Positions 1,848 to 63,324 of a DNA stretch of 64,000 nucleotides are shown here, in pieces. The position numbers and the translations under genes are program-made. The notes below the pieces were generated by a model. That model was not told where the DNA came from and ran no database searches. It saw only the letters and a program-made list of their open reading frames with translations. The stretch's first letter is position 1. The number at the start of each line of letters is the position of its first letter. The stretch comes from Penicillus capitatus (lineage: Eukaryota > Plantae > Chlorophyta), in the NCBI GenBank assembly GCA_965649825.1, contig OZ287696.1, forward strand, positions 2,233,724-2,297,723, in the 5' to 3' direction.

Positions 1848-3719
1848 GTGGCGGAGATTTTCCAAGGACTCGGAGCCGTGCAATACGCCGACGATCTCCT
1901 TGTTGGCGGTGTTACCCCAGAAGAACTCTGCAACCGCGTCCGCAGCATTTTTGCGCGTTTTCAAGAGTTTGACCTCAAGGTCAACCTTGCTAAGACAGAG
2001 TTGCTGCTAACAAAGGTCAAGTTCCTGGGAATGGAACTGTCGCACGGATCCTGGACCCTGACAGACTATTTCCGCAGTCGTTGGGCACAGCTCGGAGAAG
2101 TGACACACTGGAAAGATCTCGAGCGCCTTATCGGGGTGCTCTTATACCTAAGGCGAACCATTGTGGACCTCGAGAGACTAATCGCGCCTCTCCGACAACT
2201 GCTTTCCCAGGCCAAAGCCTGGAAACAGAACGCCGACTGGTGGGCCCAAGCCCGACGGAAGGTCTGGGAAGTATTGCTGCGAGCACTCGACCGACAGGTG
2301 CTTCTCGAGCTGCCCGGCCTCCGACCAGTGCGATACGTCCTCGAAACGGACTGGTCCGGAGAACACGCAGGATACCTGCTGTGGGCAAGGGGGCGCGGCC
2401 GTGAACACCTCGTCGACCTCGGTAGCAAGGCCGTACCAGAAACGACCTCCTCGTTCCTCGGGGAACTGAAAGCGATCGTTTGGGCCTGTCAGGCAACAAA
2501 GCCGCTGCGAGGTGACTTTCCCCTACTCATCCGGACGGACAACCAAGCGGTCGCCGAACAACTGAGCACCAGCACGCCAAGTCTCAAGGACAAGAGAGTG
2601 CTGCGCCTACTAGGATGGCTCCTAGGGAATGAAAACTTCATTGTCGAATTTATTCCCGGGGCAGAAAACCAAGGCGCGGACCTCCTATCCAGGCCCCGTA
2701 AGGGAAAGGGTGTGGCTGAGGTGTCTCAGGCAACGGCGGGCCCGACGCGAGACCAGCTGAGGCAGATCAAGAAGGCTCACGGGGGGCACTTCAACTGGCA
2801 GACGACGCTAAGAAACCTCAAGGCGATAGGAGCGGATTGGCCGGGAATGCGAGCACAGGTTCGACAGTTCGTCCGGGAATGCAGACAGTGCCAAGCCTAC
2901 GGCCGACCCATCCAGCGACCCGTTTGAGGCTCGTGGGACTGCCCCTGCCCCAACGACACGAACTTTTGCGATTTCTTGGGGCCACTGCGCTGGGAAAAGG
3001 AGGACCCCGACGTGTACATATTCGTGATGATCGACGGCTTTAGACGATACATCTGTCTGGGCGCAGCCGCTGGCCCAACCACCGAGGCGGCAAAAGCAGG
3101 CATCCGCAAGTGGCGACATCACTTCGGATCTCCTCGTCGCCTGGTGAGTGACCAGAGTGCGGCCTTCGTCTCTACAGACTTTGATGAATACTGCAGTCGG
3201 CATCACATTGAGCTGGCCTGCTCCCCGGCATACGCTCATTGGAGCAACGGAATGGCCTAAAGGGCCATTGGTACCATCTTGGGTCGCATCCGCAGGGAAG
3301 GGCCAAGCGCACCCTGGCCTGCCCTCATCCAGCGCATTGAAGAAGCATATAATCGCTCATGGCACTCCGCCATAGGGTATGCCCCAAGGCTTCTAATGAC
3401 AAGCGAACGGCCCGATGGCACCAGGCTCTCGAACGCAGAACTGGAGAAGATCAGAGAAAGGGCGCAAAAGCGCTCGGACGGCCAGCGCCAGAAGAGAAGA
3501 ACGAGACATGAGCGGACCATCCCGACCAGACGGGAATTGCGAGTCGGAGACGAGGTGGCCTTTCAGATACAGCGCCCTGAAAGCAAGCTTGCGCCGCAAT
3601 GGCACTTTGGCTGGCGCATACACAGGATGCTGACTCCGCACCTCGTCGAAATCGAGACTCTGGACGGCAAGGTACGCAAGTCTTGTCACGCGCATCAGCT
3701 GCGGTTGCTGCGTGGATAG
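1848..3719 (+). pseudogene. Ty3/gypsy-type pol (RT C-half, RNase H, integrase), 5'-truncated, with two in-frame stops
   Basis: ORFs 1848-2927, 2976-3260 and 3279-3719 share one frame. RT motif QYADDLLV...KVKFLG; RNase H ETDWS...GELKAIVWA...IRTDNQAV...ENQGADLLSR; HHCC zinc finger (HGGH...CRQC); integrase FCDFLGP, LVSDQSAAF, SNGMA*RAI; C-terminal LRVGDEV...KLAPQW. Stops are TGA 2925-2927 and TAA 3258-3260. Confidence 0.93.
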
Positions 3720-6469: not shown

Positions 6470-7872
6470 TTAGTTGCCTTCATCTATCGCTTCTTCTTCG
6501 ATGAGGGGCAGACGCTGATATTTTTCATTGAATCGGTCTCTCTTTCGCGAGTCAGGAATCGTCACGAGGACGACCGAGATCACGATGATAAGAGCACCGA
6601 TACCAGAAATGTACGAAATTGTCTCGGAAAGTAAAATAATGCCTAAAACTCCAGAGAAGATCATGTTCGTCATCAAGAGCGTTGTGGTTTTTGTCGGCGG
6701 TCCAATCTGCATGGCCCGCGATTGGACAACCTGAGCAAACAAACCAACAACGCAAAGTACTGTGTAGAGTGAAAGTTGAAGAAACGAATTCTCTGCATTA
6801 AATGGGATGGGCGTTTCCGTTACCACAAACGGGACGCTTATGAGGAAGAGGAAAATGTGCATGCACGCTGTCAGATTCAGACTGCTCACGCTTTTGCCGA
6901 TATATCTATGTGATCTTTGAGAATGACCCATCCAGATCATAAGAGATGGAACACACCTGAGCAGGACAAAGACAAGTCCGGTAAGGATATTTGTCGCTAT
7001 GGCTGCCATGACACCGATCTGTCGACGGTTGCTATCCCACTCTGCATCATCATCAGTATGGCCACCAAAAAGTACAAGAGGTTGTGCCACAAAGATATTG
7101 CCCACAATACATCCGGCAATACCTATCCAAGAAAGAAGGCCTAAACTCTCCATACCAAGAAAACCAGACAGTATCGCGGCTACCACTGTATAGCACAATG
7201 AAAACGACAATCTAAGATTCAATCGATCAATCTAAGGTGGTCATACCTGGATAGCTGTTACATAAGAAGCTAGCGTCGGATAATGGAAGTTTGGATGTTG
7301 CTAATGTTTGAAAAAGGAAACCTGTGGATCCTAAGATCCCTCGGGCAATGACCAATGGGAGCTTTTTCTTGGGTTCGATGAGAGAAAGCTCACTGTACCA
7401 GCTCACGCAGATCAGAACCACACCGATAAAGACACCTCGGATTCCTGCAATTTGAAAAATAGAGGTTCTCTCGGAAAGGAGCTTGACACTGGTCAGTGAT
7501 AATGCAAGTCCAAGGGAGGCTGTCATGATCAAACAGACATAGCAGTTCCAATAGTAACTGTTCACACATTCGTGAAGAATCTATCAAACGTCACATCACA
7601 GTAGTTGAGCATCACGCACTTTTTAATGCTGTTTAGGGTTTGCGAAATCACGCCTGGAAGACTGTCGCCTATCGAACAAAGGAGCACGGCGATCAGTTTC
7701 GAAGCAACACGGCATTCTCTTCTGTGTGACCACCAGAGATATGTAAGGAAATGCTACCATTAGAATCGGCTGTCGTTAAAGGAAGCGTCGTGCTGTAGTC
7801 GATTCCTGTCTCGCTCGGCGTGTCTGCTACCGAGCCGGGGACCGTCATAATAACCTTCGTATTGGTCTCCAT
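6470..7872 (-). CDS. EamA/DMT-family membrane transporter (multi-exon)
   Basis: Multi-TM translation with motifs IARGILGSTGF, KLPLSDASFL, SRAMQIGPP, GVLGIILLSETISYISGIGALII. Short GT-AG introns link the frames; start inferred at METNTK. Confidence 0.8.
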
Positions 7873-26708: not shown

Positions 26709-29700
26709 ATGTCGGAAAGCGACGAAGCGGCATTGTTTGCCGAAGCTCGTACACGACTTTATGAGAACGGCCGTCTGCGTTCGGCGTTATGGGATGAGAC
26801 GGGAAGAGTGACGGAAGCTGTAGGGAAGCCAGGTATCCATCGCCTCATAGAAGCATGCTTTCGTCAGATGTGGTATCAGATGTCGTGGAGCGTCATGCTT
26901 CGACGCTGGCGGCGCTGATACTGGAGGCCAATAGCTGCGTTGCTGACCGGGCCCTGCGGCGCGGCGTCGAGCGCGTTCTGCGTCGCGCCCTACGTCAGAC
27001 AACGTTTTTTAAGACCTTCGCCGGGGCGGTTGTTAAGTATGGTTCCACTCACCCACGGGGAAAGAGTGAGAGCTACTACTTAGCAAAATGGATCGTATGG
27101 ATCATGAGGCGACTCTCGCTGCCCGAAAGCCAAAAACCGATTTCGAGACTCCTCCATGTCGCCGGGCGTTGCTTGGATCGACTGCAAGAGCGCGATTTTG
27201 GACGGGCTGCTCGACGATGGCGGCGGCTGGCGGCTACAGATGCGGCATTCCGCAATGAGATGTGGTCCATCGCTGTCGAAACGGGATCGACGTCGCTTTT
27301 GCGATTGGTCTGCGATGCTATCGCCTCTTCGGAGCGCGATCCCCTTCGTCCTGCATTGCTCACACACTACTGCACGAATATCCTTGCATCGAAGACTCCA
27401 CCCACTCCTACCGCCATCTGTGCCTGCAGATCTCTCATAGGATCACTGACTCGGACAGAGTTCGCCGAGACGGTGCTTCCGGCATTGACCCGAGCACTGC
27501 GTCGAAATCCCGAAGTGGTATTGGACATTGCGTGTGCTCTGTTCCGTGATCTGCATTTGGATGTGAGTCTCTTTGGATTGGAGTTGCAGAAATCTCTTCT
27601 CTCACTCATTCGTCACACCAGTGCCACCGTTCAGGCAGACGCCTGTGATGTCCATTCAGCCATCGCAAAGCTCATGAGTGATCGAGACGTTCTGCAACAA
27701 ATGGTCTGTACACTCGAAGACATCGTGAGTGGAAAGAGTGAGGGAAAAGTGAAGAACATCCATGAACGGCTCTCTTTGATCAAGTCCATTGGCGGACTCT
27801 CAGCTTCGCCATCCAAGAAACCAGAATTCAGCTGTCACATCACCACCTCTTTAGCCGCATTATATGAACAAGAGGGTACGCGATGGGACCCTGTCGGAGT
27901 AAGGGAAAGTGGTTATCTGTAGTGAACGATGATGTCAAAGCAGAGGTGCTGAGAAGTACAGGCTTGTGGATGCGATCCTGTCACATCATTGCCGAAGGAG
28001 TGATCAAGATGATCAACGTCGCCTTGGCTGGAAAGGACGCCGTGCGGAACGCAGCATTGGATGCACTGACATCGTGCCGCGACAACACCACCCTCTTCTC
28101 GACAGTCTGCTGACCCCATCCACCTTATCCACTCTATCAACGGTGTCCTCCTCTGCGTCAGGGAGTGCCCTTAGTACCTGCCCTATGTCGAGTGGTGGAG
28201 ATGGGATTGGCTAAACCGGTACATCGTGCAGAGGGCGCATCGGCCCTTTTGCTTCTGGCTTTCATCTCCGCTTCCAATCCTGACTCTGGTTGAGCGCGTC
28301 CCATCATCTTATGGACCGATGGCAAAGACATGTGTGTGGCCGTTGCAGATGACATGATTGAGAAGGCAGATATCTGGAGGCATGCCCTTGCGCCATCTTC
28401 ACCCTTTTTCGATTCGGCTGTCCTTTCAAAATTCTCTGCCCCGACGTGCGAAATCCTGGCGTCCCTCTGCCAACAGCTTCTGCTGCTTCATGTTGTCCGT
28501 GTTGACAGCACACCAGGTCCGAATCCATCCCTCTCTTCTGTTGTATCATCCAGACGTGTGCATGCTCAGGATGTCTCGAACAGCTCTCTCGAGTCTTGGT
28601 CGTCCTCTGTCTCCATGGAAGCACATCTGTGCGAAGGGCATCGTTTGCTGCCGTTTTGCGTTGTCTCGGATCATCGTCCTCCCTCATGCTCAACTTCTTG
28701 GATGCCTTTCAGTATTGGATGCAGTACATGCCAGATATCACGATTCTTGCTGTCTGCCTCTTTTCCAGCAGTCACATCATGAATGGCCTGCGCTTGCAGA
28801 GTGAGAGTGGTGATGGGGATGTACGCGTGGCGCAGAGGGATATCCGTCGACGCTATTCTGAAGCCCTGTCACATCTGCTGCCTTTTGGAATGGATCTCAG
28901 CGGTCCAGTCTTGGCAAAGCTTCTCCTGGCAGCGCATCATCCCTTGATGCAATCTCCCAGAGATGCAGGTGCCACATGGGCCGCTTTCCTCAAGAGACAT
29001 CCAGATATCGTTTCCACACTCGAACGTGAGCATCTCACGAGTCGCCTCCGCATCACAGATGGTGGATGGACAGATTCGCTGGAAGAGATTGTGACAGAAC
29101 TGCAGAGTGAGATAGGACTGAAGAGTAACGATTCCAATCAGGTAACCGCCGCTCTTGTGGCCATCACCACCTGTGCCCGGCGCTTTCCTGCCGAGATCTT
29201 GACACTGCTCTCTCCCTTTCTGCATGAACATCTGGACAAGTGTGTCTGCAACCTCTCTGGTGTCAGAGCCGTGTGGTGGATGTGTTCACAGGTCCGCTGC
29301 AGATGACTTGACAGAACATGACATCTTGATCTTTAAGACGCCCGTTGGCAAACTGTTGGCCGAGTTCGAACAGACGGTCGTCATTGTCCCGGACACCAAG
29401 AAAAAACAAAAGAAAAAGAAACCCAAAGGGAGATATCGCGTGAGGCATTTCGATCATAGCCCCTTTCATTTTAGCCATATTCCTGTGACTCTAGCAAGAG
29501 AAAGTGGCCTTTGCTGAGCAGTCCGATTCTTCTGAAGAGGAAGAGACAGAAACAGTCCTCAAGAACAAACCAACAGAAAAAACCAAGCCTGCTGCCCGAT
29601 CAAAGAAATCCGGCCACTTGGACGCTGCCGAGAGACAGATGGCCTTCAGAGAAAAACAACTGCAGGAAGAAGCCGAAGTACGCCTCTCCTTCAAATCCGG

Positions 29701-32700
29701 CCACTCTTGATCATTCTGATCTCCCTGTCTTCCAGATTCGAAAAGCAGTTATGGATATCCAACGGAGGTTGGAGATTGGACTGAAGACTCTGGCGGCTTT
29801 GATTCAAGGAAACATCACGTTCGCTGCCGACCACATTGAGCAATTCTCAGACTTTGTCCTTCCTCTTCTGACCTCCGAGCTCGTCGGTTCGTCCTTACCG
29901 AATACGAGCGTATGCAGAACGGGTGATGGAGTTGCAGGAGAGGGAGCCGCTTTTGAAGTAGCAAAAGCTTTGGCCATGAGCCTACCCGAACCTCTCCATC
30001 TGATACCCCTCGATGTGGCCGTCGTCTTGCGAATTGTCTCACTCCATGAGCACAATGGATCGATCTCTTACGAAGAGATCCTGCAACACAGTTCTATGCT
30101 ATCGGTCATGCAGGGCATGAGTGCGCTCGAAACGCAAAGTACTGAGAAACCTGCCGCTGTCCGTATGTGCTGATGAATGGCGATGCAGGTGGTGGTGCTT
30201 TTTTCTTACTTGTGCCGATTCTGAGAATTGCCTTGCGCTCGGTGCACTCTCCTTTCTTCGATGGCGCATTAAAATGTCTGACGGATCACTGTGCGCCTGG
30301 AGAGCGTCTTCCACGATCAGCGATCTTTGATCTCCTCTACCTCGTTCTCTCGCACAGCCCTGCCCTAAAGTCTGTCTTCTCCCATTGTCCATTCACAGGA
30401 GCTCAATGCGATGTCTTCTCAGAAGTACCGTCGTGGGTGCTCTGAAACAGCTGTGTCTGGATCTGCTGGATAATGAGCTGTCCGCTTTGCTCGAGGGTCT
30501 GCTCTTCGCCAGCCCTGCTGTCCGTGCGGCTGCCTTGGAGGCATTGTCTCTAGTGCCGGCCTTAACAACCGGGATGTCGCTGGAAGATGACAAGATTGCT
30601 TCTCTGTTGCTCTTGGCATGTCATGACGTCGATCCACAGAACGCCACACGTGCTCAGGAGTTGCATGCAATCTCCAGAGCATCTATTACAGAAGAACAGA
30701 TGGATATCTTGTATCCACTCATGGGACACGAGACAGACGACATCCGCCATGCAACGGTCGGAGCATTGGGCGAATTTCTGGAAACGCACCCACGCAAAAC
30801 GCAACGGCTCATCGTCATGGTCATCGACACACTCAAAGGTCGAGGCCCTCTGCCATCCACCTACACTTCTATGTCTGGTTCAGGTGATTGCAGTCGAGAG
30901 TGGTTTCTGGGCGGTGCTCTGTTCTTTGAGTTATGTGGGAAGCTCTTTGCGCCGGCTCAGACCAAAATGGCCGTCGATTTTCTCTTGACTCATGGACTGA
31001 CCCATCCTGACGATGTGATCCGTGAGAAAATGGTCGTTGCGGGACTGGCTCTTGTCGATGCCTACGATCCCCGCGATCTCGATGTTCTCTTTGAACTGGT
31101 GGATCAGAAACTGGAAGAAGCAAAGGATCACGAACGCAACACCACAACCGATGATCACATGCGAGAAGGCGCCATTGTTCTGCTGGGCTCATTGGCCAAG
31201 CATCTCAGCCCAGATGACACACGTGTCAAAGACATCATTGCCAATTTGCTGGACGTTCTCTCCACCCCTGCCGAATCCGTCCAGCGTTCCGCATCCATCT
31301 GTCTATCTCCGCTAATGGCCAAATGCCAGTCCGATGCAGCATACGCGACTGAGATCGTCACGAGGCTGAAGAAACAAGTGGCAGAGGGGACAGACTACGG
31401 ACAGCGACGCGGAGCTGCCTATGGCGTTGCCGGAGTGGTCAAAGGATGCGGCATCAGTGCTCTCAAGAACTACCAGATCATGGATACACTGATGGCCTAT
31501 GTTGAAGACAAGGCCAATGCAGCAGCACGGGAAGGGGGCATCTCGGCATTCGATTGCTTGAGTCAGCGACTGGGGAAGCTCTTTGAGCCATACGTCATTC
31601 ATATTCTTCCCATTCTCCTGACCTGCTTCGGAGATGCAGCTCTGTCCGTGCGCCAGACCACAGCCGAAGCATCCAAGACCATCATGCACAATCTCTCTGC
31701 TCCCGGAGTCAAACTCGTTCTGCCTTTGCTGATGAAAGGACTGGAGGAAAAGGCGTGGAGAACGAAGCAGGGGAGTATTCAGTTGTTGGGTGCCATGGCT
31801 TGGTGTGCACCTAAGCAGCTCTCGACCTGTTTGCCAGCAATCGTCCCAAAGCTCATTACTGTCTTGGCCGATCCGCATCCCAAAGTGCACTCCGCTGCCG
31901 AATGTGCTTTGGAAGAGGTCGGTTCGACGATACGCAATCCGGAAGTGCAACAGCTGGTGCCAGATATCCTCAGTGCCATTGCCTATCCCTCAAAGAACAC
32001 CGTGAGCTGTTTGGAGAAGCTTTTGGAATCGCGATTCCAGAACACCATCGACGCTCCCAGTCTGGCATTGATCGTTCCAGTGGTGCATCATGGACTGAAA
32101 GACAGGACGGGAGAGAACAAGAAACGCGCGGCCAGAATTGTCCAGAATCTTTGCAAACTGGTGAACGATCCCAAAGACATGGACCCCTACATTCACCTTC
32201 TGCTGCCCGAGCTCAAGAAAGGCATCGTGGATACGTTGCCGGACGTCCGTGCCCAGGCCTCCAAGGCATTGAGTGGACTGATGTATGACATGGGTAAAGA
32301 GGCGCTTGATGAAGTGATGCCCTGGCTTCTGGAAACGCTGGAATCGAAATCTTCTGCCGTCGAGCGATCCGGTGCCGCTCAGGCCGTCGCCGAAGTGCTG
32401 GCCGTTTTTGGCGATGCCTATTTTGAGAGTCTCTTGCCAAAGATCTTGCAGAACTGCTCTTCAGCGAACGCCATTCTCCGCGAAGGTGGCATCGCCGTCC
32501 TGCGTTTCCTCCCCTTCAGCATGCCAGATCTCTTCCAGAGCAAACTGGACGTCGCCCTCCCTTGCATTCTGGATGGACTGGCAGATGAGAACGAATCGGT
32601 ACGGGATATCAGTCTGGGAGCTGGACGGACATTGGTCGATGTCTATGCTCAGACATCGCTTCCTGTCATCTTGCCAGCTGTCGAGAAAAGCCTCTTCCAT

Positions 32701-35568
32701 GCCAACTGGAGAATTCGACAGAGCTCCGTCGAGTTGCTCGGCAATTTGATCTTCAAAGTCGCCGGGACGTCGGGGAAGATCAAACTCGATGGAGGATCGG
32801 ATGATGAGGGTCCAGCCACACAGAGCTGTGGACGAAATCTGATCAAGGCTTTGGGACTTGAACGCCGCAATGCCGTTCTGGCAAAGCTCTATATCGCACG
32901 GTCGGATGTCCAACACCCTGTTCGCACAGCAGCCTTGCACATTTGGAAGACCGTGGTGGTGAACACGCCCAAAACGCTGATGGAGATGTTAACTGCCTTG
33001 ATGGATTTGATTATCGAGATGCTGGCGTTTGGTGAAGAAGACAGTCGACAGACCTCGGCGCGTTGCCTGGGAGAGCTCGTTCGCAAAATGGGCGACCGAT
33101 TTCTGCCCAAGATCATTCCGATCATGGAATCGTGTTTTTCGTCTGAGAGCATCGAGACGAGGGAAGGGGTGTGTTATGGACTGAGAGAATTGCTGGACAG
33201 TCTGAGCAATGCACAGATGGCAGAGTATCTCCCTGTTCTGCTGCCGACGATCCAATCCACCTTGTGTGACGAGAACTCCGCTGTGCGCATCTCCTTTCCT
33301 CTCTGTCATCATCATCTTGTTTTCAGGTTCGTGAGGCGGCGGCTGTGGCATTCGATGCTCTGTTTAAGGCAGGCGCCAGTTCCGTCGTGGAGTCCGTGAT
33401 TCCAGACCTTATGCACAAACTCGAGCAGGAGAAGATGAGTGATCAGGCGCTGGAAGGATTGAGAGTGATCTTGTCCATTCGACCTCACACTTTTGAAAAC
33501 ATGATTCCGAAGCTCCTGAGAGATCCCACGACGTCACGAAGACTGACGGCATTCGGTGCATTGGCAGAGGTCGCGCCTGGAGCATTGAGAGCACATCTGG
33601 CGTTTCTCCTCAGACATCTGATGAAGATCGGCAGCGAAACGAGCGACGCCACGGAACGCATCACAGCCGCCAGAGAAGCTGGGAAGAAGGTACGGCTTCG
33701 TTCTCTCCTGACCACCCGATCAGGGTCTGGATGCAGGTGATGCGCGTGTACCCTGAAGACCACCTTCAGTCTCTCGTGGCCGAATTGAAGAAGGGTCTGG
33801 AAGACAGTTCCCTTCGCCTCTGTGCCTCGATCTTGATAGCAGCATTGGCCGATGCTCGGCCCATTACGGATTACGTCGAGTCGCTCTTGCAGTCTTTGGT
33901 TTCTCTTATGAGTGAGGAAGATCCTGTCGTCTTGACGGAATGCTGGAAGGCAATGCGGTCCGTTGCGGGAACCGTGGCCAAAGAGATGCGCCCAACCTTC
34001 GTTCGGTTTGTCACTCTTTTTCTCACTCTTTATTTTGACGGCCATTGCATTTCAGCGTGCTCAGCGATGCCGTCGATACGGCTAAAGAGAGAGAACGGAG
34101 AAAAGACCCATCAAAGACTGCCATTATCGTTCCAGGCTTCTGCCTTCCCCAAGGCATCGCCCCTATTCTGCCTTTCTATATCGAAGGCGTCCAGGCATCC
34201 CCGTCTTGTCATGTGTGCAAAACCCGTTGACGATATGTCATATAGGGAGCATCGGGTGATCTGAGAGAATCGTCTGCTACAGGATTGGGCGATTTGGTGT
34301 TTGTCATGGATGCTGCATCACTGAAGCCCTTTGTCGGGTTGATCATGGGTCCACTGATCCGCATCATCAACGATCGTTTTCCATGGCAAGTCAAACTGGC
34401 CATTCTGAAGACGATGGGACAGCTGATCTCGAAGGCTGGGGATGAGATGCGCAAATTTGTGGCCGCCTTGCAGCCCATTTTCCTCAAATGTTTGCCAGAT
34501 CCGACAGAATCGATCCGAGACAGCGCCGCCAAAAATCTCGGCCACTTGACTCGATTGAGTCCACGTATTGACCCTCTGATCAACAACCTCGGCACTTTTG
34601 CTGTCAAAACGGAACCTCCCATGCGCAATGCCTATCTCACCGCTATGGCTGAAGCCCTGACAATCAGCGGCGAAAAAATCTCGCCGCCTGTCCTGCAGAA
34701 AACAGGGACCGTTCTTCTGGACCTTCTCTCCTCTACAGGTCATCTACCTGATGATGTGACAGGTGGATAACATGTGTATGCATGGTAGATGAAAACGAAG
34801 ACAACACGATTGCCTTGGCGGTCTGCTTTGGCAGCTTCTGCAAACACTGTGCGGCAGAGACCATGATCGATGTGTTACAGAAGCGGCTCTCAGAGAACGC
34901 AGCGATCTGGACAGAACGTCTCTTGACAGCGGTTCTGATGGCAACGATTGCGAAACACAGCACGCAACGACTTCAAGAAACGGAGCTCCTTCCACTCTTC
35001 ATCGAGGCCTTGACCAAGGTCTCCATCTCGCATACATGCCTCGTCCTTCACCTCTGTTTCTCAGTTTGCCAGAGATGACAGTATTCCTGTCAAGAAAGCA
35101 GCTTGTCGCGTGGCTGCTCGATTGTTCATGTCAGACAAGAGCGAAGCAGCATCCCAAGCTGCCGTCTTTGTCCTGGTCACCTGTCTCAGTCCCGATCAGA
35201 ACACGGACATCCATGAAGAAGGTCTGCACCTCTCTTCTGCATCCACGCGTCCATACCGACGGTGCTGTTCTTTAGCCCTGAAGTCCATTCAGTGGATCTG
35301 TGCCGATGATGCTGAGCGAATGAAAACGCATCTGAAAGAGATCGTCCCGTTGCTCTGTGCCATGGCTCGCGATGCGGCAGGTTCTAAGAAAGCTGCGTGC
35401 GAGACAGCCATTGCATTGATTCTGGATCTGGGCGACGGATTCGACACCGTGCATACCTTTCTGGCAGACAACCCTGGAGCGACAGCCAAATCTCTCCTGA
35501 CCGAGCCTTATCTTCGCAGAATCCAGCGGTTGACCAAACCCACCGAACACGAGAGCGAGACCTACTGA
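26709..35568 (+). CDS. GCN1: GCN1/ILITYHIA HEAT-repeat translational activator
   Basis: RRGAAYGVAGVVKGCGISALK, FEPYVIHILPILL, WRTKQGSIQLLGAMAWCAPKQLSTCLP, IDAPSLALIVP, WRIRQSSVELLG, GPLIRIINDRFPWQVK. About 20 short introns. Confidence 0.96.
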
Positions 35569-54581: not shown

Positions 54582-57500
54582 TACTTTGTCGTTAACCGCG
54601 TGGTTCATCGACAGCGTGACAACTCGTCGCTTCCGTCGTTGACGCGCCGCCCACCTCACTACACGGACACGGCCTCGCTGGCGACGGGACCGCATTCGCA
54701 ATTTTTGAAGGCGTTTTACGCCACCCCCGAACTCGGCTGAAAGCACGCGGAAGTTTCGGAGTTGGGCCCTCCGATCTGTCTCATGTCGCGTAATCCCAGC
54801 GCTTGGGCCAGCGTCGCAAACGATGAGGCTGCACCGAGCGAGACGCGACCGCTGCCTGTCGGCCAAGTTGCTCTCACGGCGACTCCCCGACGTCTCCCTC
54901 GTCTTCCTGCCATTCGTCCGTGACGACTTTCTTGACGACTCTTTGCGAGTCTGACGGACCGAGGCATGCTGTTCTTTGACGTTTCTTGACAAGACGACGT
55001 TTTCTTGCCCATTCATTGCAGGTTTTGTGGCAAGTGCACGTGGTAGACTGGTGTTATTCAACCGTTTTCCCTTAATTGCCTCACTCACTCTCAGCGTGTC
55101 GTGGTACTGTGTAAATACTTAACTATCACACAGCACATGTCTCTGACGAACTTCGACACCCTTCATTCTTAGTTGACACAGTCTTTCTTCCTGATGGGAC
55201 GTGGTGCAGATTCTTTCCGACCGCATTTTTTGGCCGACTTCAGCTTACTCCGTTACCTTCTGGTTCGCGGGCAGTCCGTAGCGGAAAGCGGTTCTCTGAC
55301 GTCGAAGAAGGCGGCCGACGGTCAGAGTGAAGGCTTGCAGGAATGTTTGTGCGTGCGGGTGGAGATGGCTGACGACGAAACTGTATCGAGGCGAGAAAGG
55401 CAACATTTAACTAAAGTCGTCAAACGAAATCGGTTAAGAGAGATTCCCGCGGGGCTAGGAGAGGTCCTTACTCCTGGCGTCGGAGAAAAAATACAGCAAT
55501 CGTCTACGCACGGAGGCAGTCGGAAGTTATTCTCGTCCAGACCCGTCCTTATGTCGGTCTGGTTAGAAGAGTGTTTTCCGGCGGTTTTTACAAAATCGGC
55601 TGCCCGAACTTCTTGGATGTTTTTTTTTCCATTTCCCCTGACGGGGCGTGGCACATGTTCATTCAAACGCCATGTAAATGAGGAATTATATATATTCTCA
55701 GTTGACACAGACGTGGTCGTCGCTTGTAAGATCTTTCATCTTTGAATTCCTAAATCCTTTACCCACAAGTATCCCTGCTTCTATATTCATGGATCCCTAT
55801 CTGTCCACTGGTCGGTGTGAAACTTGGAGGCCGCTATAGTACTTAGAACATCGCTCTGTTTGTATCGACAAACCCCGTCTTTTTTATAACTCTTTCATTT
55901 CAAGAACATAGTCTCTCGCGCCGGCCGATGCAAAAGTGAGTTATGTCTCGAAACTTAAAGTCAGTCTGTAACACAACATACTTCTCTTCCCATTTTGAAG
56001 GTTCGGAGACGAAAATCGAATCTCTATTCCGATTTATATCTAGACCATCATCATTTTGGCCCATGTGGCACATTTAGATACTCCTCGCCTGTGATACTCA
56101 GCGACCTTTCCGATGCTCTTGTTCGACCTCCGACAGTTTCGCTCTTCTATGAAGCAATGGCAGTTGAACCGCTGCTGCTTGCGAGGCTGCAATCCAAGAT
56201 TGCTTCCCCGATGGCATCTGACGTGCAACGAATCCTTCGTTGAGCACCGATCGCATTCTGCTTGCTCGTTTCGTACAATGGACAAGGTACATACTGCAAA
56301 GCATTTCAGGCTGCCGTTGGACAACACGAAGGGTCCAAATGGCAGTCCAAGGCTCCAGCATGTTCTCATAGTTGTCCGACGAAACGATCAATCCTTGAGT
56401 CGACGGTAAGTATCAGACGGATTCAATTTAAACATATCCGCGGCACCAATTTTAGAACCATCCGTTTTCTTTATTCATCTCGATATACAGAGAGCATTTA
56501 GCATGCGTCGACGACACCAGATATTTGTTCAGGTACTGATGATGAATACGGGTGTGTCCAGCTAATAAACTGCCACTCCGCTTCACTCGGAGCCTCTACG
56601 CGGAAACTACATACAGATAAACAGACACGTCTCATTTAACCAATGCATGGACATTTAAATCGTGCATCCGCCGGGCGAACGCACGTAACGCATTTTCTCC
56701 TCCGTTTATTCGCTGCCTGTCTGTGCTTCTGACGTGTCGTAGTTCTCGACCATCCACATTTTTCTCCACACAATGCCTCGTTGCGAAACACGTTGCAGAT
56801 GCGCCATCGGTCTTTGCGGTCTGGACTGCCCATGCCAATTACATTGTCTGTGCAAAACTGGTTCTCCTACGGAAATCTACAACGGCCCGTGCGGCTGTGG
56901 CCACTGCGACAAATCGTGCGCTGCTTGTAACAGAACGTCCGAGGAATTTCGTCGCAAAACCATGCTTGGACGTGTCAGAGGAGGAATTGTCCTTGCCTCA
57001 ATATTCGCAGGCACCACCTTCGTGGTCATCCGCAGAAGAATGAACCGCGCACAAGTAACCACGACGAGCATTTTTTCAAACACAAATTCTTATTCCATAG
57101 GCTGCCTGAGTCGCTCGTCGAAAGAAATTTTCCGCAGCCGTAGATATCGCAGAGTACAAAGGAATCGATGGTGTGGTTTACTACGACCTCGATGTTTTTG
57201 TCGGTCGGCGTGGAGGGCTGAGCGAAAGCACTGCCGGCCATCGCATCTTCCGTACACGCATTTTCACCTAGGCCTTGTATGATAGAAGAGAGTTAGAAGT
57301 TTAGGCCGCTGCGGGCGCTACAGTTGTTGCTACATTATGAAATGAATTGCGTACAAACAACGTTTACCAACACCACGGCCTCGCTCGCTTAGGGAGAAAA
57401 GTTGCGGCCGGCTCGCGTCTTACCTCAACGTGGCACGAGAGGACACCGAGGCAGAGGCAGTCGCTGATGCACTCTGAGCACAGTCGAATATTCCAGATGC

Positions 57501-57683
57501 GCAGGCACGTCGGCTGATACAGGGAAAAAAGAACATGTGGCATGCAGACAGGGTGAATGCGTTGTTGGGCTTGGTAGAGTGGTTCTTCCTCGCTCGCCCG
57601 AAGATTTTTGTCTCGTGGCTACAGCGCGACGCGAACGACTCGTGAACTGCTGCTGCATGAGAAATGCGCCGAGTGGACCGTCG

Positions 57684-58617
57684 ATGTCCGCGGAAGCTGC
57701 TGAGAACCCAACATCGCATGACCCATCAGGTTGCGACGTGGAGATGCCGATTAAGTCACCTCTTTCCCGAGGTGGGCAAAATCCACCGCGCGCTGGGCGA
57801 GAAGCATAGTAGGGAATACTTACCCAGATTCTGATGGCCTGTCATCACGTCGAGTAGAATCTAAAAGTGTCGCCGCCGGATGGCTCGGCACCCTACATGC
57901 CCCTCAGCGAGATTCGGTCGAATGACAGACAGCAGGAAGCATACTGCCGGGTCCTGTCTCAGTAGAACGAGCTCTACGCAGAATGTCGCCGCATGAGAAC
58001 GCAGGTCACACAGGCTCTTGTCCTACACGAGCAGTGCTCCGTGGAGTGGGACGACCCCTCTGTGTCCTCGAAACAGGAGCTGTTTCGCCGCAGGGAGAAA
58101 GCTGCCAAGGAGCGCACCGGCAAGGCAGGTTCAGGAGGGAAGCACAGACTCCAGGATCCGCCTCCGAAGGAGGTGGAGTTTGTGAATCCGGACTTGGAGG
58201 AGTACCTCCTGGCATCGCTCGAGTCGATGCACAAGAGACTCATCCCAGACTGCAGAGTCTGATCTCCGCTGCGATGCACGTCCACGTTAAGAGCTTGTCG
58301 GATCCAGACTCCCGGCAGCGCCACGCCGTGAAGCGCCTTGCCATCGACCAGAGAAACGACATCACGAGACTGGGCATCGCTCCCAAGCGACTGGCGCGAG
58401 ACGGCAGTGGAGCGAAGAGGTACAGAGCCGTCGAAGCGACGACCGGGGTCTCGTCCTCCACGAAGGATGCTGGATGCCGTTCGTCGAGCGTCCCTTCGAA
58501 GATGAGGAGGCGTCAGGATGGGAGACGACTGCCGACCACGTCCTGCGTCGTCTGCCGAAAACGACTTTCGATCTGAGCGAAGCAGAGGCGAAGCAGACGA
58601 TGCTCTCGGACAGATGA
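57684..58617 (+). CDS. Hypothetical protein (multi-exon)
   Basis: Spliced reading MSAEAAENP...NELYAECRRMRTQVTQALVLHEQC...KHRLQDPPPKEVEFVNPDLEEYL. The 3' exon frame is uncertain. Confidence 0.5.
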
Positions 58618-58675
58618 CGACGGCCAAAATGACTTACTCACTCGATTGTTCTACGACGTCGACGGCGCCATTCTC

Positions 58676-59633
58676 ATGAAACGTGTGGCCCTTCGGCTTT
58701 CATCCGACGTGCGACGCCTGACCTCTGCGCGATCCCGAGACCTCGCCAAGCGGCGTCGACGGCCGCTCTCGTGTCCCCCGGTCTTCCCGAAGGACGGATC
58801 CCCCGAAGAGACGACTCTGCTCTCGGTGCGGCTCCGTGCCCGAGCTGGAGTTCGCCAGAGGGACTGCGGCGCGTGACGACTACGACGCCATCTGCGTTCT
58901 CGGAGGCGGCCACTCGGCCGACGGAACGCATCCGCCCTGGGTCTCGCGGCGACTCGAACTCGCCCGACGTCTCCTCGAGCGCCAGGCCGGTCCCGCCGTC
59001 CTCCTGTGCGTCGGTAAGCGATTCCCTTCGGACGTCTCCTTCGGAGGTATTTGTGCAGGGGGAGGAACACCGCACAGGCCGCCGCTGTGCGACGAGCACG
59101 GCTACGCGGTCCATGAGGCGACGCTGCTCGCGGCGGACCTGATCTCGCAGGGCGTCGATGCCCGACGACTCCTAAAGGAGTATGCCTCCTACGACACCAT
59201 CGGCAACGCCTACTTCACAATGACGTCCCACGCCATCCCTGCGAAGTGGTCTCGCGTGGCCGTCGTCACCAGCGAGTCCCACATGCCGAGGTCGAGAGCT
59301 CTCTACACCGACATCTTCAGCCTGGGGAGCGCTCACCTGCCAGATTCGTACCGTCCTGCGATCACCCGATCTCCTGCCGATCTCCTGCAACCTAGGTTCC
59401 TGCTGGAGTTCTTCGCGGCCTCGGACGAAGGCGCCCTGTCTCCTGAGGTGCTGGAAGCGCGGCGCGCGCGGGAGGCGGCGAGTCTCGCCGAGTGGAAGCA
59501 GAACTTCGCGAAGATCGAATGCCTGGCAGACTTCCACCTCTGGCTCTACGCCACCCACAGGTGCTACGCCGTGGCTCGGCAGCACGAGTTCGCATTCTCT
59601 GACATCGGCGACCTCGATCGACTGACCTATTAA
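58676..59633 (+). CDS. DUF218/YdcF-family protein
   Basis: DAICVLGGG, RRLELA, GGGTPHRPP, EYASYDTIGNAYF, VAVVTSESHMPRSRA. The start exon is uncertain. Confidence 0.88.
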
Positions 59634-59643
59634 ACAAGTTGTG

Positions 59644-61012
59644 TTAAAGGCGAAACTCTTTCGACTGGACAGGTTCGTTTCCCGATCCCCGTCGCCACGT
59701 TCCCGGCATTTGGTCCTCGTCCGTCGCGTCCATCCTCCACTGCTCGTTGAACAGGACGGTCGACAGATACCGTTCGCCGAAGCTCGGAAGAACGACGACG
59801 ATCAGCTTGTCCCGGTTCTCCGAGCGCAGCCCGACGCGCAGGGCGGCCTCGACGGCGGCGCCGGACGAGATGCCTGCCAGGATCCCCTCCTCCGTCGCCA
59901 GTCTCCGCGCCATGGCGATCGCTTCCTTGCTCGACACCTTGATCACCTCGTCGATCAGGTCCCTCCTGAGGACCTTCGGAACGAATCCCGCGCCGATGCC
60001 CTGGATCTGGTGGTAGCCTGGCCGGCCGCCGGACAGGACGGCGCTCTCGGTCGGTTCGACGGCGATGAGCTGTATCCCCGGGTTCTGTTCGCGCAGGAAC
60101 TGTCCGGCTCCGGTGATCGTCCCTCCGGTCCCGACGCCCGCCACCAGAATGTCGATGGCACCGTTCGTGTCGTGCCAGATCTCCGGCCCCGTCGTCTCGT
60201 AGTGCGCCTGAGGATTAGCCGGGTTCTCGAACTGCTGCAGCATGTAGGCTGAGGGCAGCTGCCTTCGGATCTCCTCTGCCTTCTGGATGGCCCCTCTCAT
60301 TCCCTAAGGCACCACACCCTGTCCGACCCGCCGAGCGCGGCCGGTTCACCTGCGATCCGTCCGTCAAGACAAGTCTGGCGCCGAACCCCTTCAGCAGAAC
60401 GCGCCGTTCCGTGCTCATCGTGTCCGGCATCGTCAGGACCAGATCGTACCCCAGAGTGGAGGCAACGAAGGCCAAACCCACTCCGGTGTTGCCGCTCGTC
60501 GGTTCCACCTACTCCACAGATTCTCCACCCAAAAAACGGCTGCGAGGTGGCTCGCACGAGTGTCGTGACTCCCGGCTTGATCCATCCTCTCCTCTCCGCG
60601 TCACGGACCATGCTCAGCGCGATCCGATCCTTCACACTGGCCACCGCAGCCACGACATCACTTTGCAGAATCGCGTTAGGGCTCGTGCCTCTTGCAGGGT
60701 TCCATGGTCTCGAGCTTGGCGGCGATCTGCGCGAAGCTGGTCCTTACCACGCGGTTCAAGAACACCTAGCAATCGTCGGCTGCCGGTCCGTGCGAACGGA
60801 AGTCATACCGTCGGCGTGTCCCCTATGGTGGCGCACACGTCGGCGGAAAGCTTTGCGCTGCCGTTGCGTTTGATGTCGGCCGCGAGCCCACCGTCTGCTT
60901 CGCTCTGGCCTCCGATCTCCATCCTCGGCCGCAGACGCGCGCGTCGAGTACTGTGTCCAGCTTTGTGACTCGAAACTTTCGGTGAACCTTTCCACGGAAG
61001 GACAGTCCGCAT
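59644..61012 (-). CDS. OASTL: Cysteine synthase / O-acetylserine(thiol)lyase with organellar presequence
   Basis: [73 protein letters not shown]. Confidence 0.96.
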
Positions 61013-61095
61013 GATGCAAAAAAACGACAACCCGTACAGGAGAACGAACGCACGCGTTTTGGCAAAGATGATGACGACTTCCATCACTGAGGCGT

Positions 61096-62750
61096 CTAAT
61101 TCACCTCTTTGATCAGCGTCAGAGTCTTGCCCTGGTCCCAAAACGGAAAGTCCTTCTTCTCCTGTTGCAGCTTGAACGTCTTTACCTCACTAATCGTGGC
61201 TCCTTCACGGGCTAACTCCATCTGCCTAGCCGCATTCTCCCTATAGCGCTGGCTATAGGGATGGCACTCGACGGAGAGGGCCCCCTTGCGCTCGTCGGAG
61301 TTGAGGTTTCTCACCAGATTCGACAGCTTCTTCCAAGCACGCTCCGTCCTGATCTTTGCGATAGGGTAGTACACCAGGCGATAATAACGACCCACGTCGA
61401 CGTTCTTAATGGAGAGTGGCTTGAACATTCGACAGTATCTGGAAGAGACTCGGCAGGAGTATGAAGATGGGCAAAGACTGACCTGTTCACCCGAATATGC
61501 AGTTTGCGCTCCCTGACAGTCCACCTCAGCCAGTCTCCGTCCTCTTCAATGTCTCCGCCCCCGAAGATTGCCTTCATGTGTTCCAGGAGAGATCTGTCGT
61601 CTGACAGCAGCCAGAACTTAAGCTGGATGCGGAAGTACGGGAAGGTGCCGGACTCGACTAATCGTCCAGCGAAGAGTCCATAGCTGCTGTCGATCCAACC
61701 CATGAGCCACTTGTTATTGAGTTGGGGCCTCCACTGGCACGTCTCCTTGAAAACAAATCCCTCGTCCTGCCAGACGCCCAGGTCCTTGTAGCGCTGCACC
61801 CATTCCCTGAAGGTGTCCCTGGACCGTTGGAGGAAGAGATTGCCATTGAGCAGATGGATGATACACGGTAGGTGCTTGTCGTCTTTCACGTAGAAGATCT
61901 CTTTGGTGTCGTCGGCGTGGCCGAAGTGTAGAAGGGAGCGGATCTTTCTGAAGAACTGTTTGTCTGAATGGTGCAGCGCGAAGTAGGGACGCCCGTTAGG
62001 GCCGACCTTGAATGGGAGCTGTGCCTCCGTGATGCCAATGAACCACTCAGCGAAGTGCGTATCCAGATGGTCTTTGTTGTCGGGTTGGACTTGGTGAAAG
62101 GCCTCAAGGCTGGGACGGGACAACGGCAGACTTAGCGGATCGTTGCTCCGATCTGGACGAGGTGGTCTAGGCGACCCGTGTCTCAGTTCCAAGTCCTCCA
62201 GGGACCCTACACTCTCTTTCTCGCTCTCTTCGAGCTTCACTAGCTGAGAGTCCGTGATTTCCATCTTCTCGGTTTCTTTGTCGACTCCGTCAGCTTTCCT
62301 GAGCTGGTGTACAATCGAGCGGACCATCCGATCGGACGATGGATCGCAGTGGGAGAACGGCAGAACTTTGAAATTCGCGAGCCGTTTTGTTCTCTCCGGT
62401 GTCTCCCTGTGCATCCTTCGCAGCCGCTTGGCATCTCTTTTCGTTGCCTTGTGCTTACGGACGAGGTCGACCGCGAGGACGCTCTCTTCCGGCGAGTGCG
62501 TTCTCCGATAGACTCGCTGCCGGATTTCTTCTTCATCTGCCTCGACGTCCTTTGCCTGATTCTTCACCTCCAACTTCTTCGCGTAGCCGTAAAAACGCTC
62601 GTCTGCGTCTTTGGGTCCATCGTCTGCTTGACGCGCGCGACCTCGCGCGAAGGAACGTGAAGTCGTTGCCGTCTTCGTTGCTAGTCGATCCCGCAGACCG
62701 CTGCCGACATTCCATCCCGTGAAGTCGAGGAGACGGCAACTCCTGTGCAT
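61096..62750 (-). CDS. Nuclear, intron-containing double-motif LAGLIDADG protein with a long N-terminal extension (~536 aa)
   Basis: Exons 62750-61483 and 61438-61096 (44-nt GT-AG intron). Motif 1 FAEWFIGITEAQ..F..D...I...LHFGH; motif 2 WLMGWIDSSYG..F; spliced C-terminal RYCRMFKPLSIKNVD. Confidence 0.85.
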
Positions 62751-62976
62751 CAGTTCGGACTCTCCTTCAATGCGGCGTCACGTCGAGAGACTCGTGCACT
62801 CAACTATCCGACGCTGTAACATCAACGGGTCATCGCAGTCACGCGCGGATGCCGTTTTCGAATGCAGAGTCACTTCTCCCTGCGTTTGTGTTGATGTTCC
62901 GAAAAAACATGTCTGAGCTTCTTTAAAAGCGAATCTGCGCAAAATCCTCGACTAGTAATAGGTTAAAAACGTCTTC

Positions 62977-63324
62977 TTATCGAGAAACATCAAACAACAA
63001 TTTGTCTCGGTCGTCGGATTCGCGAAGAGTCGTCAAGAACACGTCACAGTCGCACATCGCTTGCTTCCAAACTTCCCAAAGGAGCAAAATCTTCAGTTCG
63101 TCGGGATCTGCTTCTACCGCCCTCCTGACATCAATTAGTGTTCGCCCCTCCGTTAAGAAGTATCCATTCAGCTCTCTGAAGTCCTGCACAACCCGGATCT
63201 TTTTCTTCCTAAGATTCAGGAATGGCATCAAAGGACTCAGAAACATCCGCATACCTGGAGAAACCCTTTCGATGTACCCGAGTTCTCCATAGCGGCGGAG
63301 TTGTTTTCTGAGATCTTTACTCTT
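62977..63324 (-). mobile_element. Degenerate Ty3/gypsy RT remnant
   Basis: Extending the ORF upstream gives LRKQLRRYGELGYIERVSP...SPLMP...KKKIRVVQDFRELNGY (RT N-terminal motifs). The AT-rich, stop-riddled sequence up to 64000 is probably the decayed rest of the element. Confidence 0.8.

Follow-up and report, generated by a model that had tools for sequence, protein, structure and literature searches.

A nuclear LAGLIDADG protein family in Bryopsidales: apparent loss of the nuclease and a possible role in organellar intron splicing

A two-exon LAGLIDADG gene in a nuclear setting

We analysed a stretch of 64,000 nucleotides (nt) of DNA from Penicillus capitatus (GenBank assembly GCA_965649825.1, contig OZ287696.1, positions 2,233,724 to 2,297,723; hereafter the window), in which a gene for a LAGLIDADG protein lies on the minus strand between 62750 and 61096. 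The gene has two exons and a coding sequence (CDS) of 1,611 nt, which begins with an ATG at 62750-62748, ends with a TAG at 61098-61096 and encodes 536 residues. Two open reading frames (ORFs) in different frames, an ATG-led one from 62750 to 61311 and a second one from 61524 to the stop at 61096, are fused into this single CDS by excision of a 44-nt GT..AG intron (61482-61439). Exon 1 (61483-62750) comprises codons 1-423 and ends in phase 2 within the Arg423 codon. Exon 2 (61096-61438) comprises codons 424-536 and the stop, and its predicted C-terminus ..TLTLIKEVN matches ..YLTLIKEVD of Caulerpa.

The intron is well supported. Its length is not a multiple of three, and its removal restores both the frame and the junction seen in orthologues: the joined sequence ..HIRVNR|YCRMFKPLS.. 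agrees with the full-length homologues of Caulerpa lentillifera (..KVNM|YCRMFRPMS..) and Bryopsis (..KIKR|YCRMFKPLS..). Introns of 46 nt are present at the identical site in three other paralogous or orthologous loci from two metagenome assemblies, and the annotated Bryopsis gene has an intron of 331 nt with position and phase identical to those of the window gene. The intron (R423|Y424) falls within a helix of the second LAGLIDADG half-domain. The first-pass annotation of this DNA had placed the gene at exactly these coordinates and had put a spliceosomal intron inside the domain; both statements held. In one paralogue (P0003; intron at 7281-7326 of locus L003) a GC-AG donor (GCCAGT) replaces GT-AG, the position being unchanged.

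An in-frame TGA nine codons 5' of the ATG is kept in all four loci. The start codon is therefore secure, and an upstream coding exon was ruled out. The approximately 250 bp upstream of the ATG (62751-63000) is conserved at the nucleotide level among the four loci, apparently more so than the synonymous sites of the CDS (not quantified), and holds a TGACG-containing block in addition to the conserved in-frame stop. This region is probably a 5' untranslated region or a promoter. An ORF just upstream (62977-63252) was taken at one point for a reverse transcriptase fragment of a retroelement; this guess was dropped, as Pfam gave no match.

The gene is nuclear. Its neighbours in the window are a multi-exon GCN1 gene, a Mei2-like RRM_2 gene, TRAPPC9, a fragment of a long terminal repeat (LTR) retroelement, a DUF218 gene and a cysteine synthase gene. 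The GCN1 ORF is 58-59% identical to nuclear proteins of Bryopsis sp. KO-2023, and the next best named matches are from other green algae and land plants. The GC content at third codon positions (GC3) of the LAGLIDADG gene is 0.69, within the range of the neighbouring genes (0.51 to 0.84), versus 0.23-0.41 in organellar LAGLIDADG ORFs. The Bryopsis orthologue is located on a scaffold of 11.4 Mb. Rfam gave no match to a group I or group II intron, or to any other RNA family, around the gene in the window, so the idea of a hidden intron RNA was dropped. Pfam at E ≤ 1 gave LAGLIDADG_1 alone in the protein, with no intein or pentatricopeptide repeat (PPR) domain. On all these points (a nuclear gene, GC-rich nuclear-like codons and no surrounding group I intron, intein or PPR tract) the analysis agrees with what had been read from the letters of the DNA at the outset.

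Fold, active site and ancestry of the family

Taken alone, the window protein scored 15.1 bits against the Pfam family LAGLIDADG_1 (PF00961; gathering cutoff 23.1; E = 0.044), and its best PDB match by phmmer had E = 0.38; the Bryopsis orthologue passes Pfam LAGLIDADG_1 at 25.7 bits. Single-sequence searches were thus marginal only, and a family profile was required. We built this profile from eight family members (alignment A1). In the PDB, it matched chains of the I-OnuI type at E = 3e-7. When the same profile was run exhaustively with HMMER against 1.84 billion cluster representatives, 828 proteins scored at E ≤ 1e-3. Among these, a tier at E = 1e-28 to 1e-13 consisted of double-motif proteins of about 300 residues, which aligned over nearly all of the profile (positions ∼10-213), carried the canonical motifs FLEWFIGFSEGDGSF and WLSGFIDAEGCF and had strong Pfam LAGLIDADG_1 scores. 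At the level of the family profile, the assignment to LAGLIDADG is unambiguous.

An AlphaFold (AF2) model calculated from an alignment of 98 sequences (A2) reached a predicted local distance difference test score (pLDDT) of 92.4 and a predicted template modelling score (pTM) of 0.88. It contains two alpha-beta-beta-alpha-beta-beta-alpha halves, with additional helices at the C-terminal end. A model obtained from the eight-sequence family alignment was discarded (pLDDT 59.5, below 50 in the second half). When compared with the PDB by Foldseek, the accepted model matched I-OnuI, I-PanMI, I-SmaMI and I-LtrI over approximately 285 columns with a probability of 1.0 and template modelling (TM) scores of 0.52-0.66. 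From the profile matches and the model, residues ∼207-469 (61300-62132, minus strand, interrupted by the intron) are predicted to form a complete double-motif LAGLIDADG fold, in line with the full double-motif domain claimed in the first-pass annotation. The domain span includes a family-specific lead-in, PLSRP (62112-62126), and an interdomain linker, CQWRPQLNNK (residues 338-347; 61710-61739), in which C, W, P, Q and N do not vary within the family but do so among relatives.

The two motifs are WFIGITEAQ (motif 1; residues 236-244; 62019-62045) and WLMGWIDSSYG (motif 2; residues 348-358; 61677-61709), both on the minus strand. The altered turns ITEAQL and WIDSSYG read as described before. 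It had also been claimed that the acidic motif residues remain. E242 (ITEA) and D354 (WIDS) are indeed present, but these are structural, non-catalytic residues at position 6, and the catalytic acids at position 8 are absent from every family member. In alignment A2, 77 of 88 organellar relatives have D or E at position 8 of motif 1, whereas all ten family members have Q there (Q244 in the window protein; 62019-62021). Position 8 of motif 2 is E or D in 78 of the 88 relatives and S, N or G in the family (S356 in the window protein), where it is followed by an inserted residue (here Y357) at a column that is a gap in all 88 relatives. In addition, a Gln adjacent to the active site that is 93% conserved in the relatives is replaced by His (H261) throughout the family. 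Because the last acidic residue of each LAGLIDADG motif carries out hydrolysis (PMC2758277) and is replaced here, canonical two-metal DNA cleavage appears to have been lost. The pattern of replacements suggests that this loss predates the diversification of the family, and an endonuclease role is very unlikely.

The family was searched for in 5.8 billion clusters at 90% identity and in the 1.84 billion representatives. Four close copies, that of the window included, are assigned to two metagenome contigs (488 kb and 929 kb), the window copy apparently to the 488-kb one. The other members are Caulerpa lentillifera g6543.t1, Bryopsis BSKO_00238 (annotated as 'hypothetical protein'), Ostreobium quekettii evm.model.scf_2338.1 and a few Logan and JGI contigs; domain identity to the window copy is 58% for Caulerpa, 47% for Bryopsis and 43% for Ostreobium. 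At E < 1e-30, only four of the 1.84 billion representatives were found, each of them a family member. A profile search of the word-indexed database of 5.8 billion proteins returned the family only; the Ostreobium protein and the organellar relatives were reached solely by the exhaustive scan. All named sources belong to three genera of Bryopsidales (Bryopsis, Caulerpa and Ostreobium), and in the collections searched the family appears to be restricted to this order. The three genera represent the three suborders of Bryopsidales, Ostreobium being early-branching.

The ratio of nonsynonymous to synonymous substitution rates (dN/dS) between the window copy and an 87%-identical orthologue was 0.12 for the whole gene, 0.077 for the domain plus C-terminus and 0.20 for the N-terminal extension. 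Between paralogues, dN/dS in the domain was 0.20-0.28. The ORFs are intact in all copies, that is, in at least six lineages or copies. The gene is under strong purifying selection, and because of this and of the shared intron, a decaying organellar insertion was ruled out. Presence of the gene in all three bryopsidalean lineages that could be named likewise speaks against decay, and domestication, which the first-pass annotation had supposed, is well supported.

One paralogue (P0004, in locus L001) differs from the others at its 3' end (L001 7336 to ∼7870), where the usual stop has been lost and a divergent tail of 60 residues is encoded. The tail holds an internal tandem duplication, in which ..STFM.GLK.STYDYSGKTFRS.. 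occurs twice. This copy also has the highest dN/dS, 0.36 overall and 0.5-0.7 in the N-terminal region, and may be under relaxed constraint or functionally diverging.

The closest relatives outside the family are intact ORFs of mitochondrial cox1 and nad5 introns and of chloroplast psaA/B introns. One of them (P0016) lies on a mitochondrial contig with nad4L, nad6, rpl5, rps3, cox1 exons and nad7, two (P0014 and P0064) adjoin cox1 exons, and one (P0018) lies between psaA/B exons. Longer matches form in-frame fusions with nad5 or psaA/B exons. These contexts bear out the organellar group I intron type named in the first-pass annotation, and the sequence relationships point to an organellar group I intron whose double-motif LAGLIDADG ORF gave rise to the family. 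In a neighbor-joining (NJ) phylogeny, which is a crude one, the family was monophyletic in 50 of 50 bootstraps and had a long stem. The sister group was unstable: the cox1-intron ORF P0064 was the sister of the family in 23 of the 50 bootstraps. A mitochondrial cox1-type origin is weakly suggested by this placement, and the assignment of a donor organelle or intron from the NJ tree was kept as a weak lead only. Because no PPR domain was found in the family members or in the 108 nearest relatives scanned, and because all the nearest relatives are intact organellar enzymes, a transfer independent of that of the plant PPR protein OTP51 would be the parsimonious reading.

The four best-scoring relatives outside the family (P0013, P0014, P0015 and P0016) are ORFs of ∼500-650 codons that encode two tandem double-LAGLIDADG units and thus four motifs. 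Three were located (P0016, L004 8001-9599; P0013, L005 2784-4274; P0014, L007 2212-4161), and two of the three, P0014 and P0016, adjoin cox1 exons in mitochondrial contigs. The second units of P0013 and P0016 have degenerate motifs (GFSEGSAQW, GYIDAKGSL), and may show a nuclease-dead unit arising naturally within an organelle.

Terminal extensions and neighbouring loci

The domain is preceded by an N-terminal extension of ∼206-231 residues, which had earlier been put at ∼230 residues with an Arg/Ser/Thr-rich start. The first 45 residues contain 9 R/K, 4 D/E and 9 S/T. By composition and hydrophobic moment, the first 40 residues (62631-62750, minus strand) are presequence-like: they are basic and Ser/Thr-rich, and include an RSF|A (R-3-like) motif. 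The element GWNVGSGLRDRLAT in the N-terminus is invariant among the four close copies. From these features, we infer that the N-terminus may target the protein to an organelle. Farther downstream, residues 98-123 (62382-62459) form a strongly basic cluster, RKHKATKRDAKRLRRMHRETPERTKR, with a net charge of +6 per 20 residues. It is conserved in Caulerpa-type sequences, and is a candidate for a nucleic-acid-binding tract or one resembling a nuclear localization signal (NLS). It is followed by an acidic stretch (residues 161-189; 62184-62270) that ends with SLEDLEL, and whose D/E-L-x-E-L block is common to the Bryopsis and Caulerpa homologues.

At the other end, a family-specific C-terminal extension of about 65 residues (residues 470-536; 61099-61299) has the conserved pattern ERK..HPY..Y....E(L/V)AR.G in alignment A3, and is predicted by AF2 to be helical. 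No sequence match to it was found in the Pfam scan or in the PDB profile search. A reading of the extension (..ELAREGATISEV..) as helix-turn-helix (HTH)-like was dropped, being unsupported by either search.

In all four loci (the window, L001, L002 and L003) a cysteine synthase (PALP) gene lies 3' of the LAGLIDADG gene on the same strand (window 59644-61009, minus); in Bryopsis, cysteine synthase is unlinked to the LAGLIDADG orthologue. Candidate start codons of the cysteine synthase occur only ∼90-175 nt past the LAGLIDADG stop, and use of the longer candidate would give the protein an additional N-terminus that is transit-like and rich in R/S/K. The two genes could form a bicistronic or overlapping transcription unit. 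The cysteine synthase gene carries a 49-nt GT-AG intron (60509-60557, minus), which joins ..GVTTL|VEPTSGNTG... Given this intron and the LAGLIDADG introns of 44-46 nt, very short spliceosomal introns are normal in this genome.

The window and L001 loci are paralogous and apparently lie on one contig. On the cysteine synthase side they are 94% identical across 3.8 kb (window 57386-61156 versus L001 7782-11565), and identity is just 76% over the LAGLIDADG gene (window 61132-62943 versus L001 5799-7642). Identity changes within the final ∼40-60 nt of the LAGLIDADG CDS, which points to gene conversion or a later re-duplication confined to the downstream block. Elsewhere in the window, an ORF at 1848-2927 (plus strand) with reverse transcriptase, RNase H and integrase zinc-binding domains represents an LTR-retrotransposon fragment. 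The protein of the window GCN1 gene (26855-33399, plus strand) is 95% identical to P0162 on the 929-kb contig that carries L002 and L003, and both long contigs therefore come from closely related algae.

Proposed role, rival explanations and significance

We propose, largely by analogy with OTP51 and with a probability of about 0.5, that the protein is imported into an organelle and acts there in trans as an intron-RNA chaperone or maturase. A copy of an organellar intron LAGLIDADG ORF would have reached the nucleus before the sampled lineages of Bryopsidales diverged, and would there have gained the spliceosomal intron, nuclear codon usage and the N- and C-terminal extensions. Both catalytic acids and neighbouring active-site Gln residues have been replaced, and the saddle-shaped scaffold is kept under strong purifying selection. 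The basic, Ser/Thr-rich N-terminus, which is net positive and has few acids in its first 40 residues, would be an organellar presequence, and the mature protein would bind intron RNA in trans and aid its folding and splicing. Such a maturase-like factor could serve the many ORF-less introns of Bryopsidales organelles: the mitochondrial DNA of Ostreobium has 47 introns, 18 of them with ORFs, and that of Caulerpa has 29 introns (PMC6944098).

OTP51 is a nuclear protein with two LAGLIDADG motifs that lack the endonuclease residues, and is required for splicing of a plastid intron (PMC2758277, PMC8393795); in Arabidopsis and other land plants, where it is a PPR protein, this intron is ycf3 intron 2. 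The algal protein shares with OTP51 its nuclear gene, the two LAGLIDADG motifs, the missing endonuclease residues and, apparently, an origin from an organellar intron ORF that was retained by selection. Unlike OTP51, which was compared by its description, the algal protein has no PPR tract, its N- and C-terminal extensions are distinct, its family is confined to Bryopsidales and its nearest relatives are intact organellar enzymes rather than PPR proteins. Organelle import and a maturase-like role are plausible because of this analogy and because of the intron-rich mitochondria of Bryopsidales. Maturases provide examples of LAGLIDADG scaffolds that act on RNA folding. The yeast bI3 maturase does so with no known endonuclease activity. 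I-AniI is bifunctional, with a documented maturase activity (PMC2647301). Both act on their own intron inside the organelle, whereas the algal protein is nucleus-encoded and would act in trans after import. Nor is it an intron-encoded maturase in the usual sense, in which the protein is encoded by its own intron, since the gene is nuclear and has no surrounding ribozyme.

Several observations weigh against the proposed splicing role. An RNA-binding module such as PPR or RRM is absent at Pfam E ≤ 1. Among the four close copies, conservation of the first 26 residues is unusually high, and these residues have no sequence relationship to the N-termini of the Bryopsis and Ostreobium proteins. Support for the cox1-intron sister was limited to 23 of 50 bootstraps, and psaA/B-intron ORFs have similar scores. 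Finally, the N-terminal region, with its NLS-like basic cluster and the acidic stretch after it, would suit a nuclear DNA-binding protein equally well.

The last point leads to the most serious rival, namely, that the protein is a nuclease-dead, sequence-specific binder of duplex DNA that uses the LAGLIDADG saddle in the nucleus or in an organelle. As a nuclear transcription or chromatin factor it would be a eukaryotic analogue of WhiA, a bacterial transcription factor with a degenerate, nuclease-dead double LAGLIDADG scaffold and a C-terminal HTH domain; as an organelle nucleoid protein it would occupy a homing site or organise DNA. An intact saddle fold is predicted with high confidence, and several surface-type positions in the half-domain 2 beta-strands (R157, K172 and D198 in domain numbering) stay the same throughout the family but differ among relatives. 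The basic and acidic tracts of the N-terminal region and the failure of Pfam to find an RNA-binding module also fit. WhiA itself resembles the algal protein in combining a dead double scaffold with an added C-terminal helical region. However, the recognisable HTH of WhiA has no detected counterpart here, the C-terminal extension showed no other DNA-binding add-on, WhiA was absent from the best 50 Foldseek structural matches and no sequence relationship to it was found, though no comparison aimed at WhiA was made. Moreover, the extreme N-terminus resembles a presequence more than the start of a nuclear protein, and the literature searched describes a single characterised nuclear LAGLIDADG relic of the green lineage, which acts in RNA splicing. 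We therefore consider DNA binding possible but doubtful. The narrower proposition that the protein is a programmable-type, sequence-specific DNA binder, serving as a nuclear regulator or an organellar homing-site blocker and not as a splicing factor, is unlikely.

A still-active homing or site-specific endonuclease of the nucleus or an organelle, comparable to yeast HO, would account for the complete double-domain architecture, for the fact that the closest solved structures are active enzymes and for the duplication of the gene within the genome. Yet no member has either of the metal-binding acids or the flanking active-site Gln, and hydrolysis requires the last acid of each motif (PMC2758277). 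The gene lies in no intron or intein, and its duplicates are found in segmentally duplicated loci together with cysteine synthase rather than at intron or intein homing sites. This makes the endonuclease reading very improbable. It is harder still to credit a decaying insertion of mitochondrial or plastid DNA in the nucleus (NUMT or NUPT), or an artefact of assembly or contamination, with an ORF preserved by chance. The sub-threshold Pfam score of the single sequence and the metagenome assembly source could be taken in this sense, but the intact ORFs, the domain dN/dS of 0.08-0.28 and the intron position and phase conserved from the window lineage to Bryopsis speak against it, as do nuclear codon usage, nuclear flanking genes and an orthologue on a chromosome-scale Bryopsis scaffold. 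A pseudogene would not be expected to combine a whole-gene dN/dS of 0.12, intact ORFs in all copies and nuclear-like GC3. Both of these readings are effectively excluded, and the imported splicing factor remains the reading that we prefer.

Compared with the organellar monomeric LAGLIDADG enzymes, the protein has the same motif spacing and many of the core residues, for example FxEWFIG, LxNGN and WLxG, and with I-OnuI, I-LtrI, I-PanMI and I-SmaMI it shares both the fold and the domain order. It differs from them in being encoded by a nuclear gene with a spliceosomal intron, outside any organellar intron; in its long terminal extensions; and in the changes at the active site (D/E to Q in motif 1, S/N/G plus a one-residue insertion in motif 2, Gln to His). 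Among nuclear insertions of organellar homing endonuclease genes that decay, one that also has active-site mutations is the telomeric relic of Ustilago maydis, a recent, strain-specific and untranscribed GIY-YIG relic (PMC7593156). The algal gene, in contrast, is old, has been conserved throughout an algal order and evolves under purifying selection.

In the literature searched, we found no description of nuclear LAGLIDADG genes in Bryopsidales or in green algae; only mitochondrial ORFs and OTP51 were discussed, and the Bryopsis genome preprint discusses LAGLIDADG for mitochondrial ORFs only. The nuclear bryopsidalean family is thus apparently new and undescribed. Annotation pipelines label it 'hypothetical protein', and Pfam misses most members. 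The family is open to experiment, since Bryopsis has a genome, transformation-type tools and RNA interference (RNAi), which works in this alga (PMC12961179).

If the protein binds DNA after all, a WhiA-like transition would have evolved independently in an algal order, and an organellar DNA binder would block invasion or cleavage at an occupied homing site. OTP51 is the sole nuclear domesticated LAGLIDADG protein of the green lineage that we found in the literature searched. The algal family would be a second, probably independent, nuclear capture of an organellar homing-endonuclease gene, this time without a PPR partner, and fixed across an ancient algal order with unusually intron-rich mitochondria. 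It would offer a natural experiment in how the scaffold of a selfish endonuclease becomes a host factor, through replacement of D by Q, of Q by H and of E by S plus an insertion, and through the addition of new terminal modules.

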